Shown here: positions 18,911-61,458 of the stretch, piece by piece
Layout: the number at the start of each line of letters is the position of its first letter
Numbering within the stretch: position 1 is the stretch's first letter
Origin: Podarcis melisellensis
Lineage: Eukaryota
Direction: 5' to 3' (one strand)
Assembly (NCBI GenBank): GCA_964234715.1
Contig: OZ174275.1
Length of the DNA stretch: 64,000 nt
Notes under the pieces: model-generated
Database searches by the model: none
What the model was told of the DNA's origin: nothing
Seen by the model: only the letters and a program-made list of their open reading frames with translations
Translations under genes and position numbers: made by a program

Positions 18911-19489
18911 TTATGGGGGCGGGGGACTAGTTTCCCCAGTCTCCTTTATTTGAGTAATTCAACTGTGGAAGCAAAATGCAAAGCCTAAGATCACCTCTAC
19001 GAATATGTTTTTCATTTAAGATTTTAGTGGTAAGCCTGATTACATTTAGAAACCTGTATACCTTTTATCACAATTTTCCAAGACGTTTAAATGGAAGAGC
19101 TTAATGAAATGGACTATAAGACAGAAGCCAGAAGGTTCTCTGCCTTCCCTACAAGCTAATTATTCTTTGAGCAGAATCCATTTTCTGCCAGCTTTTGAGA
19201 GAGATGCTGTTTTTCAGTAGAGTGGAGCTAAATAATTCATATATAAAAATGTTGCCACTTTATCCGAGTAGGAGAGTAGCAATAAGGTCCAAAGCATGTA
19301 TTACAGGGAGCCAAGAAAGATTTCTCACTACTATTGAATAACCAAAGACTGTCTTATTTTTCTTCTTGTTGGCCTGGCGAATAGATAATATTTCTTCCTT
19401 TTGAGTAGGAAAACGGGTTACATTTGACCATCTGCCAAGACATGCTAATGCAGGAAGCTATGCAATAAAATAAAATCAAAATTAAAGTA

Positions 19490-19845
19490 CAGTGGTGCCT
19501 CGCAAGACGAAATTAATCCGTTCCGTGAGGCTCTTCGTATAGCGGTTTTTTCGTCTTGCGAAGCAAGCCCATTGACAGCTTAGCGGATTAGCGCTACAGC
19601 TGTCAAGCGGCTTCCAGCGATCAGCTGTTAAGCGGCTTATCAGCGGAACAGCTGATAAGCGGCTTAGCGGCTTAAGAAAAGGGCGGAAAAAGCGAAAAAA
19701 ACCCGCGGGGGGATGCAAGATTTTTTTCGTCTTGCGAAGCAACCCCATAGGGGAATTCGTTTTACGAAGCGCCTCCAAAACGGAAAACCCTTTCGTCTAG
19801 CGGGTTTTTCGTCTTGCGAGGCGTTCGTCTTGCGGGGCACCACTG
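19490..19845. mobile_element. Tc1/mariner (Tigger/pogo-like) MITE, copy 1
   Basis: TA TSD; 22-bp TIR CAGTGGTGCC(T/C)CGCAAGACGAA; CpG-rich interior. Confidence 0.9.
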
Positions 19846-20372
19846 TAGAGGCATAGAGCAAAGTGAACATGATGTGACTGGAGAATACCTGAAGTGGAAA
19901 CTTGTGCTTTAAGAAAGACTGTACCAGCTGAAGAAAATAAAGTGTGAACCACTTTTCTTTTTTAGTGACCCCACAATGCTGAAGTGCTGAGATTGCTGGC
20001 GAACAATAGCAGAAAGGGTTTTACGCTCATGTCTTGCTTGTGAGCTTCCCATAAGAATCTTGCTGGCCACTGGGGGAAACAGGATGCTAGCCTAGTTAGG
20101 CTTTGATCAGATCCCACAGAGTGGCTCTTATGAGATATACCTCCCTAATCGGAAAGGTGTGACTCAAGTTGCAATTGCATACCCATTTACCTAGAAGTAA
20201 GGCACACTGGACTGTGGGTGTTTTACTTCTCAGTAGGCATGCATAGGATTGCCCTGGTTGCCACCAGAACTGATCAAGAGATTTGAGGCCCTTTCACTTG
20301 TTGCAGAGATAAGGAGCACAGCAAATGTATGCTGTAATATCCAAGGTAGATACATCATAAAATGTGGGTGGA

Positions 20373-21510
20373 GGGGGGCCACTAGGGGGCGCATTGGAAG
20401 ATGGCCGACAATACCATCTCTCCGACCCACACGGGGTAATTAAGAGGCTGTTATGGGAGTAGGCAGCCTCCCTTGTTGCCCCAAGGAAATGGGGAACACT
20501 TGCCTGCTGTGCCCATAAATCACCCCCTAATTCAAAAGAAGGGGGTGAGGGCCCTAGGCAGAATGCCCCCGTGTGGACCTCGGCTCTCCTGGGCGCTGTC
20601 TCTGATCGCGCACTAGTTGCAGCAATTTGGAATAATTAATTACAAAAGAAGCAAATGCACATATTTCAAGTGAATAAGGGGAGTGGTCTGCTAATTTAAG
20701 TGACCTCTGCGAAAGAAGACGACGGGTTGGAGAAACAGGAATATTTTACAATGAAGATACACCAAAGGCGGGGTATGTTGACAACAGGGCTGAATGGGGG
20801 GGGGGACCTTTTTTACTTTTCTTCTATGTGATTTACAAGAACCCCTCCTCATTAGAACCGTCGGTTGAACTGACCCAAGCGGGATGATTAAGATCTGTGT
20901 GGAGATAAACTTTAACCAAAAGTATGCTTTATGGAGACCGAGAAGCAATAAGAGCTTTTGGGAATGGCGCAGCAATTAATTCGGAGTTGCCATCTTGCCA
21001 AAGGATTTATAGCCGGGAAGAAGAACGGATTTGTTTTCAGACTGCATTCCTAGTGAATCTCCTCAGAGGTTTTGAGAAAGGAGGCAGATTGGTGAAGATT
21101 AATGACGCTAAGACTGTTTTGATGTATGGAAGTGATGTTATATGGAAAACGTCTGGATATGGCTACTGAATTAAAAAAAATAATATCCACGCAGGATTAC
21201 AAACTGTTCTAACCAGCTTGCGGAGACTATCAGAGGTCACAAAGAGAAAGAAAAAATATATGAAAATAACAACAAGAGATGTGGAAAAATAATAAGAAAG
21301 GACTGGATAGTACTGTGAACAACATAAGGTTAGATTTGTGGACATTAAAACAGCAGTAAGAAGAAGTTGATTGGATCCGTTCGGAACTTGAAATATGGGT
21401 ACCCCCAACAAAAATTTAAAATTCGGCTGTGTAATTTGGAATTTATGTAATTTGGTTTGATTTGATGTGATTGGTCGGTTAATAAAAATTATTCTTAAAA
21501 AAATAAAAAT
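20373..21510 (+). mobile_element. Full-length ~1.1 kb non-coding L1-dependent retroposon, copy A
   Basis: 5' G-run plus GGAAGATGGCCG; AATAAA at 21481-21486 followed by an A-rich tail; TSD (AT)AAAATGTGGGTGGA at 20357-20372 and 21509-21524; end-to-end homology with 53311-54415; no long ORF. Confidence 0.85.
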
Positions 21511-31940: not shown

Positions 31941-32404
31941 TCAGTTTTGGAGGTTGCACCCAAAGTAGTACTTCCCATCAGTGCAAGGATTTTTGCTTGT
32001 GCAACAGAACTTCTGCCTCCCCTCAAGTACCTTCTAAATATGTTCTAGGGGTGGGGGCAGGGCGGGAGGGAGCCTTGCTGCACAAGTGGAAATTCTTGCA
32101 CTGACAGGACTCGTTAATTGGATACCACAGTGAAATTAAACAGATTTTTTCACCTCTTAGCAGTTTGCTATGCCTTCATAGCTTGTAGCCCTAATGAGAA
32201 ATTAAATTTTGCAGAATTTTTATCCACTTCTTGTAAACAGAAACCCATGACTCATATGTGTCATAATCCACCTGCAAATTTAAGACCAAATTGCGAGTTT
32301 TCAGCTGTATCTCATAAGAATTACTATTAGTGGAGCCTTGTTCTACCAACACCTGTTTAGGAAGCATGTATATAAAGCTCAGAAGTTATAGCTATTTGCA
32401 AATA

Positions 32405-32788
32405 CAGTGGTGCCACGCTAGACGAAATTAATCCATTCCGCGATTCTCTTCGTCTAGCGGTTTTTTCGTCTTGCGAAGCAAGCCCATTGACAGCTTAGCG
32501 GATTAGTGCTAGAGCTGTCAAGCGGCTTCCAGAGATCAGCTGTTAAGCGGCTTATCAGCGGAACAGCTGATAAGCGGCTTATCAGCGGAACAGCTGATAA
32601 GCGGCTTAGCGGCTTAGGAAAACGGCAAAAAAAGCAAAAAAAACCCCGCCGGGGGACGCAAGATTTTTTCGTCTTGTGAAGCAACCCCATAGGGAAATTC
32701 GTTTTGCGAAGCGCCTCCAAAACGGAAAAACCCTTTCGTCTAGCGGGTTTTTCGTCTTGCGAGGCGTTCGTCTTGCGGGGCACCACTG
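32405..32788. mobile_element. Tigger/pogo-like MITE, copy 2 of the 19490-19845 family
   Basis: TA TSD, same TIRs and body, one extra 27-bp internal unit. Confidence 0.9.
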
Positions 32789-32892
32789 TAGTTTCAAACA
32801 CAGGTATTCATATAGACATTAAAAGTAAATATGCTATTTGTTTAAATAGCCACACTTCATGTAAAATCACTTGTGTACAAACATGGTCTTAC

Positions 32893-33069
32893 TTGGATTT
32901 TGCCTCTTGCAATAATGAAGGGTCATCTGTAGCCAAATAGACTCGTTTTTTGTCAATATGCATTCTGCGGGAGAGAAGTTGGAAACGTTCTTCAACATGT
33001 ACCATATATTCTTCAATGGGATGAAATGCTGCTTCAGTTCCCACTTTGTCTGTTCTTCGGACATGAATA
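32893..33069 (-). CDS. FUT8: FUT8 coding exon (177 bp) with GDP-fucose-binding motif I ([12 protein letters not shown]) and motif II (VYLATDD)
   Basis: Alpha-1,6-fucosyltransferase motifs intact; AG at 33071-33070 and GTAAG at 32892. Confidence 0.98.
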
Positions 33070-33737
33070 CTGCAATGAAAAGCAAACACAAATTTCTCTT
33101 GACCAGGATTTGTTTGTTTTTTGTTCGTTTGTCCTTTACTTTCATTAGAACGGACTGTAAAATAAATTGGCATTAGAATATATATTATTTTCAGAACAAA
33201 TTTGTCAAAAACTACAGAGCAAGGGCTTGGATTAGTTACATGGCTGAGGGTGGGTGGAGAGAAGTAAAGATTACTAGTCAGTCCTTGAAACCAAATAGAT
33301 GGTTGGAGGCCAAATGCCAATATATTTTACACATGTCACAGTAGAATCACAGCATTATGATTTTGCAAATACCTTCAAGGTACTAATGCGCCACACGGTC
33401 AGCATGGCCTCCTTTTACACACATATCCAGTAGGTTTAAATATAGTCACCAGCTCACAGAATTTAACCTTGTGTGAAAAGACGTTGCATGTATCATAAAT
33501 GTGTATTTGTCAAGAGGGTTCTTAAGGCATTTTTATCACTTCTCTACAGTTTCATCCATACTAAAACATGCCTGCTGAACTAAAACACTGGAGTAAAATT
33601 AATTTTCTCCAGGGTTTCTGGAAAGGAAGCTGTCTTTTATTGGGGTAGTACTATAGTTACTTACTGTTGCTAATTTGATTGTGATTCTGTGGTTTCAATT
33701 ATGGCTTTAATTGTGCTCTGTCTTGTTTTAACTAACT

Positions 33738-36152: not shown

Positions 36153-36203
36153 GAATAGGGATATGGCTAAGATTGTAGTCGTAGCGCATAATAAAATACC
36201 TTA

Positions 36204-36548
<345 letters not shown>

Positions 36549-53099: not shown

Positions 53100-54464
53100 C
53101 AGTGGAACCTCATGTTACGTACCGTCCTCCTTGCAAACGCTTCGGGTAACAAGTTCTGCTAAACCGGAAGTAGGTCTCCTGGTAACAAATTTTGCCTCGG
53201 GGTGCAAGCAGAAGTCGCATGCCGGAGGCGCACGTGCAGCGGAAGACGCCATTAGCGAAAGTGCGCCTCATGTTAAAAACGGTTTCAGGATAAGAACGGA
53301 CCTCCAGAACGGGGGGCCGCTAGGGGCGCATTGGAAGATGGCCGACAATACCATCTCTCTGTCTCACGCGAGGTAATTAAGAGGCTGATATGGGAGTATG
53401 CAGCCTCCCTTGTTACCCCAAGGGAATGGGGAACACTGCCTCACCTGCGGTTGCCACAAATCACCCCCGGATTCGAAAGAAGGGGGCGAGGGCACTAGGC
53501 TCACAACCCTCGCGTGGGACGGCTCTCCCTGACGCTGTCTCTGATCGCGTGCCTGGTTGCAGGAGCTCAAAATAAACAATTAGCGAGAAGCTAATTAGCG
53601 AGTTAAGACTGCTAATTGAAGTGACCTCAGTGAAGTCGAGCAACGGGCTGGATTCAACAATATAGCAAAAAGAAGATATATCGAAGATGTTGGTATGTCG
53701 GAACAGGACTGAAGGGGGGGACTTTTCTTTTTTATCTTATGTGAGTACCTAACAATCCCCCCCCCCCCAAGAAGAATCGTTGCAATTACTGATTACAAGC
53801 AGGATGATTAAGAACTGTGTGGAAATAAATTACTACTCAAAGACATGGCTTGTGGAATATTTGGAAAGGAATGAAAGGTCTTTGTGATGCAGTTATAAAA
53901 AGAGACTTGTTGGGGCAGGCCTGGCTACAGGAATCGAGGGGGAGGAGACCAAGGTTTGTTATTATATCGGACTGTGAGTTTGATCTGGCAGAACCCCCTA
54001 AGAGAGACTGACTGGCCTGTGAAGATTAATGGACAAACTTTAAGAATGTTTTGTACGGAAGTGCGCAAATGGTCTCTGTTTGTCTCAATATGGCTCTTGG
54101 AAGAACAGAAAATCCACACAGGATATAACAACGTTTGTTTTCAACCCGCTTGTGGAGACTACCAGAGGTCACAAAGAAAGGAATATATGACAACAACAAC
54201 AAGAAGATGAGGAAAATAATAAAGAGAAGATTGATTAGAACTGTGAATACTATTTGGACAGAAATTGTGAACATTAAAGCAGCAGCAAGAGAGATGTTTG
54301 AATCCCTTTCTGAGCTCGAAGCATGGGTACCCCCAACAAAAATTTTAAAAATTGCCTGTGTAATTTGGATTTAATGTGATTTGATTGGTTTGTTAATAAA
54401 AATGTTTTTTTAAAAAAGAACGGACCTCCAGAACAAATTAAGCTCGTAACTGGAGGTACCACTG
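53100..54464. mobile_element. Tigger/pogo-like MITE (about 240 bp) split by the 1.1 kb retroposon
   Basis: TA|CAGTGGAACCTC ... GAGGTACCACTG|TA; halves at 53100-53310 and 54435-54464. Confidence 0.88.
53311..54415 (+). mobile_element. Full-length ~1.1 kb non-coding L1-dependent retroposon, copy B (antisense in a FUT8 intron)
   Basis: Same 5' end as copy A; AATAAA at 54395-54400 and short A tail; perfect 19-bp TSD AAGAACGGACCTCCAGAAC (53292-53310, 54416-54434). Confidence 0.88.
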
Positions 54465-55034
54465 TACTGTGTCTATGCAATCCCACTTTCTATTGCACAT
54501 TATACCCACCTCAATGGATATTTGTACCAGGTCAGAGACATGTTTTTCACTTCCTACAAAAATGAACCGAGTTGGATTATTACCAACATGACTCATTTTA
54601 GGGAGCCATGCTTCACATGGCATGGTGCATACTTTGCATACAAGAAGGTTGCATCTCAGGTAGAGAAAAGATGGGATTCCTTTTGCTGTGTGCTTTGACT
54701 TATCTAATTGTTTGTGTTAGGTTTTAGTGAGGTTGTTTAACAATACTGTATTGTTTCTATTTATTTTGTTCCATATTACTTTGGGTACTATTGGCAAAGT
54801 GCCAGTTTTAGAAAATTAAAAGTTTTAAATGCATAGCCACACAATCAAACACAATTTTCATGACTCAAAGAAACATGTTAATAACCTTCCCCAGACATTT
54901 CATGATTCTTTGCACATACCAGATCAGTGTACAAGCACATACCAGTGAAATATATACACCAATGTAGTACAGTATTTTTAGAATACTTTCTTTATTGAAA
55001 AATAAATCCCATAGCATAAAATCTCCTGGACCTA

Positions 55035-60942: not shown

Positions 60943-61458
60943 CCGTATTTTTCGTCCCATAGGACGCTCCATCCCATAGGACGCACCTAGTTTTTTTTGG
61001 GGGGGGATAAAGGAATTTTCCCCCCTTTATTTCCCCCCCAAAAGCAGGTCGGGGAAACCGAACCAGGTCAAGGAACAGTGGGATGGCGGCGCTTTGCCTC
61101 CCTGCTGTCCCCCGAGCTTGTGGGGCTGGCCGATGTCTGCCCGGCACAAGGGGCGCACTGCTTCAGGGCGCCCCGCCCGCCAGGCGGCAGGCTTCTATCC
61201 TCAGCGTGGGGAGCCCTGCGGGGAACTCCTGCAGGGCTCCCCACGCTGCGGATGTCTGTCCGGCGTGCGGGGTGCTCTGCTTCAGGGCGTCCTACCCGCC
61301 GGGCGGCAGGCTGCTATCCGCAGCGTGGGGAGCCCTGCGGGACCCCTCTCGCTCTCCAAGCTTCAGCGAAAGCCTGCATTCGCCCCATAGGATGCACCCA
61401 GATTTCCCCTTCATTTTTGGAGGGGGAAAAAGTGCGTCCTATAGGGCGAAAAATACGG
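60943..61458. mobile_element. Tc2-like MITE with internal ~119-bp GC-rich tandem duplication
   Basis: TA|CCGTATTTTTCG ... CGAAAAATACGG|TA; units start at 61132 and 61251. Confidence 0.9.

Follow-up and report, generated by a model that had tools for sequence, protein, structure and literature searches.

Complementary conserved blocks in the diverged middle of a non-coding, L1-mobilized retroposon as candidate long-range RNA helices

Among L1 parasites, the Alu-type SINEs are a known case in which the folded RNA is the selected trait; transcribed by pol III, Alu and B1 RNAs are about 300 nucleotides (nt) long and adopt a known fold to which SRP9/14 binds. Short long-range helices that clamp or cyclize an RNA are known from Ty1 and from viral RNAs. 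For SVA, we know of no description of conserved long-range clamp helices, and, to our knowledge, how non-autonomous RNAs compete for L1 proteins is largely unknown, Alu-type SINEs apart. SVA and other composite pol II-type L1-mobilized retroposons share several properties with the element described here: they encode no reverse transcriptase, carry a poly(A) signal and tail, have L1-type TSDs, and are about 1 kb long with conserved ends around a variable center. The present element has no sequence relation to SVA and differs from it in having a structured 5' domain with a YY1-like box. We compared two of its lineages, represented by copies A and B. Both retain two or more pairs of complementary blocks that lie far apart, and these pairs probably close the variable middle as RNA helices.

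Two copies of a non-coding, L1-mobilized retroposon

The window analyzed here is a stretch of 64,000 nt from Podarcis melisellensis (contig OZ174275.1 of assembly GCA_964234715.1). It contains 136 N and lies as a whole within FUT8 introns, with both retroposon copies antisense to FUT8. The main landmarks are as follows.

20374 to 21510, plus strand: copy A of a ~1.1-kb poly(A)-tailed non-autonomous retroposon (subfamily A), with TSD, AATAAA and A-tail and without a long ORF
53311 to 54415, plus strand: copy B, a diverged subfamily of the retroposon family of copy A, with TSD, AATAAA and A-tail
32889 to 33320, minus strand: exon of FUT8 (alpha-1,6-fucosyltransferase; PDB match, E 2e-29)
36201 to 36539, minus strand: ORF that we take to be a second FUT8 exon

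Both exons presumably differ from the human protein at several residues. Another repeat is present in two copies that are 92 to 96% identical, one just upstream of copy A (19485-19848) and one by the FUT8 exon (32400-32791); it contains palindromic GATCAGCTG...CAGCTGAT units internally, and its tail is rich in TTCGTCTTGCG. At 61129-61341, a GC-rich 94-nt unit recurs at a spacing of 119 nt and with 85% identity inside overlapping ORFs of 134 to 154 amino acids (aa), a pattern that suggests a CpG-rich tandem repeat rather than a gene. Copy B interrupts a further sequence, the halves of which (53100-53311 and 54416-54470) continue across the insertion.

Copy A is bounded by a perfect TSD of 15 to 16 nt (20358/9-20373 and 21510/1-21525) and copy B by a perfect TSD of 19 nt (53292-53310 and 54416-54434), both within the range of about 7 to 20 nt expected for L1 mobilization. 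Each copy has AATAAA followed by an A-rich tail, and each lies in a T-rich/A target site, with putative bottom-strand nicks at TTTT/AT (copy A) and TCTT/AT (copy B). The longest sense ORFs comprise 81 aa in copy A and 84 aa in copy B, and there is no ORF for a reverse transcriptase or endonuclease. Rfam 15 gave 0 matches in the window at the gathering score; at E values of up to 5, it gave only noise (E 0.03 to 2.7) and no tRNA-, 7SL- or 5S-derived head. ARAGORN detected no tRNA module in the element, and the ORFs of the element matched no Pfam family. Taken together, the TSDs, AATAAA, A-tail and target sites and the lack of a long ORF and of Rfam, tRNA and Pfam matches identify copies A and B as a non-coding, L1-mobilized retroposon of the pol II type (AATAAA plus A-tail). 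A classical pol III SINE was rejected because Rfam and ARAGORN revealed no 7SL, tRNA or 5S module, and a HAL1-like, ORF1-only L1 derivative was rejected because no sense ORF exceeds 84 aa and no Pfam family was matched. An L1 was looked for in the window and none was present; blastn with copies A and B detected no partial copies there. A literature search retrieved no description of this retroposon family, which is apparently undescribed.

The head of copy A (20376-20392) contains a near-consensus CTCF-like motif, GGCCACTAGGGGGCGC, adjoining a YY1-like AAGATGGCC box. In the head of copy B (53314-53330), the sequence is CCGCTAGGGGCGC, which is one G shorter and would break the spacing of the CTCF-like motif.

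The element is multicopy: besides copies A and B of the window, 8 independent Logan contigs carry it, and the flanks of two of these contigs differ. The additional copies were reached via the sense ORF of copy A, which led to one Logan cluster and from there to the eight contigs (0.9 to 1.26 kb), all of which belong to subfamily A and are 96 to 97% identical to copy A. Contigs L003 (positions 1140-1261) and L004 (positions 1-213), from runs ERR14657230 and ERR14127405, extend into different flanking DNA and are therefore separate insertions. The family is abundant and young, judging from these contigs; since all eight are of subfamily A, the comparison across subfamilies is still one of two lineages. 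No further copies came from exact-pattern scans of metagenome contigs, and the single match in the genome-contig scan (L001) lies within a bacterial gene of an Alistipes MAG and was dismissed as fortuitous. Exact look-ups of the ORFs returned nothing, and neither did word searches with the antisense ORFs of A and B and with the 5' ORF of B.

Conserved islands and long-range complementarity

Copies A and B are 68.8% identical overall (blastn). Their first 260 nt are ~90% and their last 250 nt ~85% identical; the middle is 63% identical, and 51% identical outside 15 islands of 6 nt or more, in keeping with an earlier remark that the middles align poorly. Intact TSDs on both copies indicate that both lineages remained mobile during divergence, and since they were mobile while their middles diverged, the islands reflect constraint on the mobile RNA or on its DNA copy. 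The blocks examined as helix strands in and around the middle are the following.

20427 to 20576, plus strand: 5' domain closed by a 10-bp helix (20427-20436/20567-20576; copy B, 53364-53373/53508-53517), found by alifold and in the ensembles
20700 to 20709, plus strand: predicted 5' strand of H1 in copy A, GTGACCTCTG, pairing with 21231-21240; in the alifold consensus
21231 to 21240, plus strand: predicted 3' strand of H1 in copy A, CAGAGGTCAC, at the start of a 15-nt conserved island
53621 to 53628, plus strand: predicted 5' strand of H1 in copy B, pairing with 54165-54172; in the full-length MFE structure
54165 to 54172, plus strand: predicted 3' strand of H1 in copy B, pairing with 53621-53628
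20895 to 20903, plus strand: predicted 5' strand of H3 in copy A, CTGTGTGGA, forming 9 bp (one U-G) with 21186-21194
21186 to 21194, plus strand: predicted 3' strand of H3 in copy A; in the alifold consensus
53815 to 53823, plus strand: predicted 5' strand of H3 in copy B, forming 9 Watson-Crick bp with 54113-54121
54113 to 54121, plus strand: predicted 3' strand of H3 in copy B; in the alifold consensus

H1 has the form GTGACCTC(TG)/(CA)GAGGTCAC, with 8 to 10 bp and a span of 540 nt, and H3 has the form CTGTGTGGA/TCCAC(G/A)CAG, with 9 bp and a span of 300 nt; both are exactly complementary at homologous positions in the two copies. A strongly A/G-rich tract lies right after the 3' strand of H1 in both copies (21241-21330 in A and 54173-54250 in B), so that the element has an A-rich stretch internally as well as its terminal tail.

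A preliminary description of this DNA had held that the shared blocks are mutually complementary and properly nested. The coordinates and letters that it gave were confirmed for 8 of 8 pairs, the partners are complementary, and H1 encloses H2, which encloses H3. As a statement about the shared blocks in general, mutual complementarity applies to a subset but not to most of them, since the proposed helices hold only about 42 of the 128 island nucleotides. About two-thirds of the island nucleotides have no conserved partner, including islands of 12 and 13 nt (columns 198-209 and 420-432 of A3, the alignment of the diverged middle of copies A and B).

Chance complementarity was assessed with conservation-preserving column shuffles, counting as strict helices those with Watson-Crick pairing in both copies and no more than one wobble. 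The middle (A3) contains two strict helices of at least 8 bp, H1 and H3, versus 0.037 expected, and 0 of 400 shuffles reached two; for an all-Watson-Crick 8-mer, P was 0.005 with column shuffles and 0.004 with dinucleotide-preserving column shuffles. Mirror, direct, parallel-complement and two artificial pairing rules produced no run of 8 or more. Within the middle, the blocks are thus conserved against a background of 51% identity, and their complementarity and nesting exceed what chance would give. The significance of the long-range helices depends on the search space, however: with the whole element, two helices of at least 8 bp were counted versus 0.57 expected (P = 0.12; for at least 9 bp, P = 0.07), a weaker value because the well-conserved ends contribute many chance helices. 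A GU-permissive count in the middle, with three helices of at least 8 bp versus 1.08 expected, was not significant (P = 0.13; for at least 9 bp, P = 0.2). The shuffle tests proposed earlier for the block complementarity are therefore positive for the middle but not for the whole element or for the GU-permissive count.

RNAalifold, which was blind to the proposed pairings, gave H1, H2, H3 and a G-run/C-run hairpin as the consensus, whether it was given the middle alone or the full-length alignment. The z score of the consensus energy was −5.7 for the whole element (0 of 101), −3.5 and −3.2 for the middle (0 of 120 each), and −2.5 for the middle without the G/C hairpin, which bears out the expectation of structure beyond shuffled controls. 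For the reverse complement of the middle, the z score was −3.0; as this signal is nearly as strong, the folding signal is not strand-specific. The consensus energy of the middle amounts to 0.41 of the mean single-sequence MFE, so that the earlier view of a branched architecture kept in much of the ~1.1-kb RNA is an overstatement. H3 is inconsistent between sequences, and a further pairing, T, rivals the inner branch. Outer helices in the full-length alifold structure (20595-20630 with 21303-21354) were rejected, having a probability of 0 in both single-sequence ensembles.

In the full-length ensembles, the per-pair probability of H1 was 0.86 to 0.98 in copy A and 0.99 to 1.0 in copy B, and it was 0.92 to 0.99 in four other natural subfamily-A sequences; across the six natural sequences folded, from two subfamilies, H1 had a probability of about 0.92 to 1.0. 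In the centroid and MEA structures of A and B, computed independently, H1 and a 3-bp hairpin are the only pairings common to both copies beyond the 5' domain. H1 is missing from the MFE structure of copy A despite an ensemble probability of 0.98, which makes the full-length MFE structures a poor guide. H3 reached 0.68 to 0.88 in copy A, 0.04 in copy B, and 0.01 to 0.27 in the other subfamily-A sequences, and enforcing it in copy B costs 4.4 kcal/mol. The strands of H1, H2 and H3 are invariant in all eight Logan contigs, and no both-sided changes were found in H1 to H3 between A and B, the two lineages compared.

The 5' domain provides context. No conserved helix of the element is longer than the 10-bp helix that closes this domain; it has a probability of 0.79 in A and 0.98 in B and contains two both-sided changes (A-U to G-C and G-C to A-U), one of which is not at a CpG. 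Five 5'-domain helices are common to the independently folded copies. The closing helix shows that the RNA of this retroposon family carries selected structure.

Inner pairings and competing explanations

Between H1 and H3, several shorter pairings were considered.

20876 to 20880, plus strand (copy B, 53795-53800): predicted 5' strand of H2, CAAGC; in the alifold consensus with flanking extra pairs
21216 to 21222, plus strand (copy B, 54148-54154): predicted 3' strand of H2, GCTTG, and also of T, which pairs with 20720-20727
20720 to 20725, plus strand (copy B, 53641-53646): predicted 5' strand of S, CGACGG, and also of T; in S, it pairs with 20858-20863
20858 to 20863, plus strand (homologous positions in copy B, 53777-53782): predicted 3' strand of S, CCGTCG, in the ungapped register
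20799 to 20848, plus strand (copy B, 53714-53763): predicted G-run/C-run hairpin, 7 bp in the alifold consensus
20720 to 20727 with 21216 to 21222, plus strand (copy B, 53641-53648/54148-54154): candidate helix T, joining the 5' strand of S to the 3' strand of H2, based on the ensembles and on homologous pairability

H2 (5 bp) and S (6 bp) are individually not above chance, and both have a probability of about 0 in the single-sequence ensembles of the two copies. The G-run/C-run hairpin has a probability of 0.9 in B and 0.02 in A in the consensus register. Its G-run (A4 columns 447-452, at about 20794-20803 of the window) is variable in length and interrupted by A in some subfamily-A copies, a variation that shifts the small ORFs there (49, 62 and 68 aa) and alters the predicted register of the G/C hairpin.

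MAFFT misaligns the 3' strand of S; in the ungapped register, where 12 of 19 nt match, six homologous pairs can form. For copy B, the complementarity reported for S holds, but the register as first written was 1 nt off relative to A, and 53641-53646 pairs with 53777-53782 at 6 of 6 positions. In the homologous register, two pairs of S differ between A and B, one by a change from G-C to A-U and the other by a change from G-C to G-U. T excludes S plus H2, and in both copies the GCTTG strand prefers the 5' region of S over CAAGC. The probability of T is 0.97 to 0.98 in A; in B, it is 0.94 to 0.97 for the pairing with 53641-53644, which is 2 nt out of register. In the register of A, 7 of 7 pairs of T are pairable at the homologous positions of B, including one with a G-C to A-U change. 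All both-sided changes in S and T are CpG to TpG/CpA transitions, and only 1 of the 15 CpGs in the middle of A is kept in B; these apparently compensatory changes carry little weight because CpG decay alone would give nearly the same result.

With T forced, the energy of the consensus fold is −59.0 versus −61.8 (alifold), and as the cost is only 2.75 kcal/mol, the comparison cannot choose between S plus H2 and T. Enforcing H1, H2, H3 and S together costs 10.8 kcal/mol in A and 4.5 kcal/mol in B, with MFEs near −310. The best structures of copy B that enforce H2, S or all four helices are equal in energy, and that with H3 alone lies within 0.1 kcal/mol, so that in the model these helices appear to co-occur; in copy A, adding S to H1, H2 and H3 costs nothing. 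The complete four-helix model proposed at the outset is still energetically reasonable in these calculations. As to its broader interpretation, the non-coding nature of the element, a stable consensus and H1 were supported, but the extent of the branched architecture was not.

On balance, we think it somewhat more likely than not that H1 and H3 are real long-range helices, with H1 clamping the variable middle into a closed domain and the inner branch having two alternatives. Copies A and B would then represent two long-separated, recently active lineages of one retroposon in which H1 and H3 fold a fast-evolving middle of ~540 nt into a closed domain. At the base of this domain, H1 could act as a clamp that brings the conserved, structured 5' head beside the conserved A-rich 3' part, and it might keep the variable middle from mispairing with either of them. 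Between H1 and H3, the RNA would have two mutually exclusive and equally conserved options, S plus H2 or T. The helices would form in vivo on the plus-strand RNA, and selection would presumably act through retrotransposition competence, that is, through template folding or packaging for L1 proteins in trans.

Other origins of the islands have to be weighed against this reading. It is extremely improbable that they are remnants of a conserved protein-coding frame. Copy A has an ATG-initiated ORF of 81 aa (20924-21169) and copy B one of 84 aa, and the two have the tetrapeptide VKIN in common; however, A and B share no reading frame, 12 of the middle's 14 indels have lengths not divisible by 3, and there is no Pfam match. 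Moreover, relatives of the sense ORF of copy A were found solely in subfamily-A copies and with lengths of 81, 95 and 108 aa, so that the ORF is not maintained. Coding as the selected trait of the element is excluded, in agreement with the preliminary description. Chance deserves more attention: the islands might be conserved for unrelated reasons (for example sequence-specific protein or RNA contacts, or promoter or processing signals), and two pairs of them might be reverse-complementary by coincidence. That the pattern was noticed after reading the sequence would fit such a coincidence, as would the many partnerless islands, the lack of covariation in H1 to H3, the P value of about 0.1 under the whole-element null, and the GU-permissive values of 0.13 to 0.2. 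We nevertheless regard it as unlikely, given that 0 of 400 shuffles of the middle matched the observed count, that the alifold z scores are −3.2 to −3.5, that the control pairing rules came up empty, and that all pairs are nested. RNA helices predict block pairs in inverted and nested order, as seen for all three pairs here. For independent protein-binding sites, this order would be unlikely; by our reckoning, it would arise with a chance of roughly 1/8 × 1/3, or about one in twenty.

A motif acting at the DNA level, with one protein-binding site present twice in opposite orientations and complementarity as a by-product, would explain why the strands of H1 carry GAGGTCAC in both orientations (it contains AGGTCA, which we take to be a nuclear-receptor half-site) and why the two strands give folding signals of about the same strength, and the head of the element also has YY1-like and CTCF-like motifs. 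Such a motif leaves unexplained that H2 and H3 are inverted as well and nested inside H1, and complementarity reaches 10 nt in copy A; we consider this origin quite unlikely. The blocks might also go back to an old inverted duplication or fold-back in the ancestral element, or to an inverted-repeat transposon that inserted into it, the arms having since decayed to collinear patches of complementarity. Their nested, collinear order and, without the S branch, the similar lengths of the arms (about 60 nt on the 5' side and 55 nt on the 3' side) agree with this possibility, which is very unlikely all the same: the arms are not complementary between the blocks, no TSD adjoins the strands of H1 in A or B, and the identity of just these patches amid surroundings at 51% would have no explanation. 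An inverted-repeat DNA transposon (MITE) nested in the element was itself rejected, as the bases adjoining the two H1 strands differ from each other, in A as well as in B, and thus form no TSD.

The reading in which H1 and H3 clamp the middle can be taken one step further, although we see this extension as a long shot: the outer clamp framing S plus H2 versus T could act as a conformational switch, in a retroposon selected purely for RNA structure. One form might, for example, be neutral with respect to translation and export and the other competent to capture L1 ORF2p, and shorter relatives would arise when reverse transcriptase bypasses the clamped domain.

Comparison with known systems

If the clamp is real, the family would be a natural experiment, with two active lineages whose middles have drifted to ~50% identity while a few complementary blocks stayed fixed, and it would show which RNA contacts matter for mobilization in trans. 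In squamates, many L1 lineages are active side by side, and partners for testing would thus be available. Even without real helices, the islands would point to short functional sites in a retroposon family that is apparently undescribed.

The element shares with Alu and B1, the 7SL-derived SINEs, an L1-dependent RNA in which folding and not coding is the selected trait; it differs from them in having no 7SL, tRNA or 5S module according to Rfam and ARAGORN. HAL1-type L1 derivatives and internally deleted L1s are similar in their L1-like head (a G-run plus the AAGATGGCC box) and L1-type insertion, whereas the present element has no ORF1-like ORF or domain. The proposed pairing itself resembles CYC5/CYC3 of Ty1, the 5'-3' contacts of HIV-1 and flavivirus cyclization, where conserved complementary blocks of 8 to 10 nt that lie hundreds of nucleotides apart likewise organize an RNA globally. 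Those helices serve priming or strand transfer in LTR elements and viruses, whereas this element uses target-primed reverse transcription, and the role of its helices is putative. What would be new, if true, is a clamp that closes a freely drifting middle in a pol II-type, L1-dependent retroposon.
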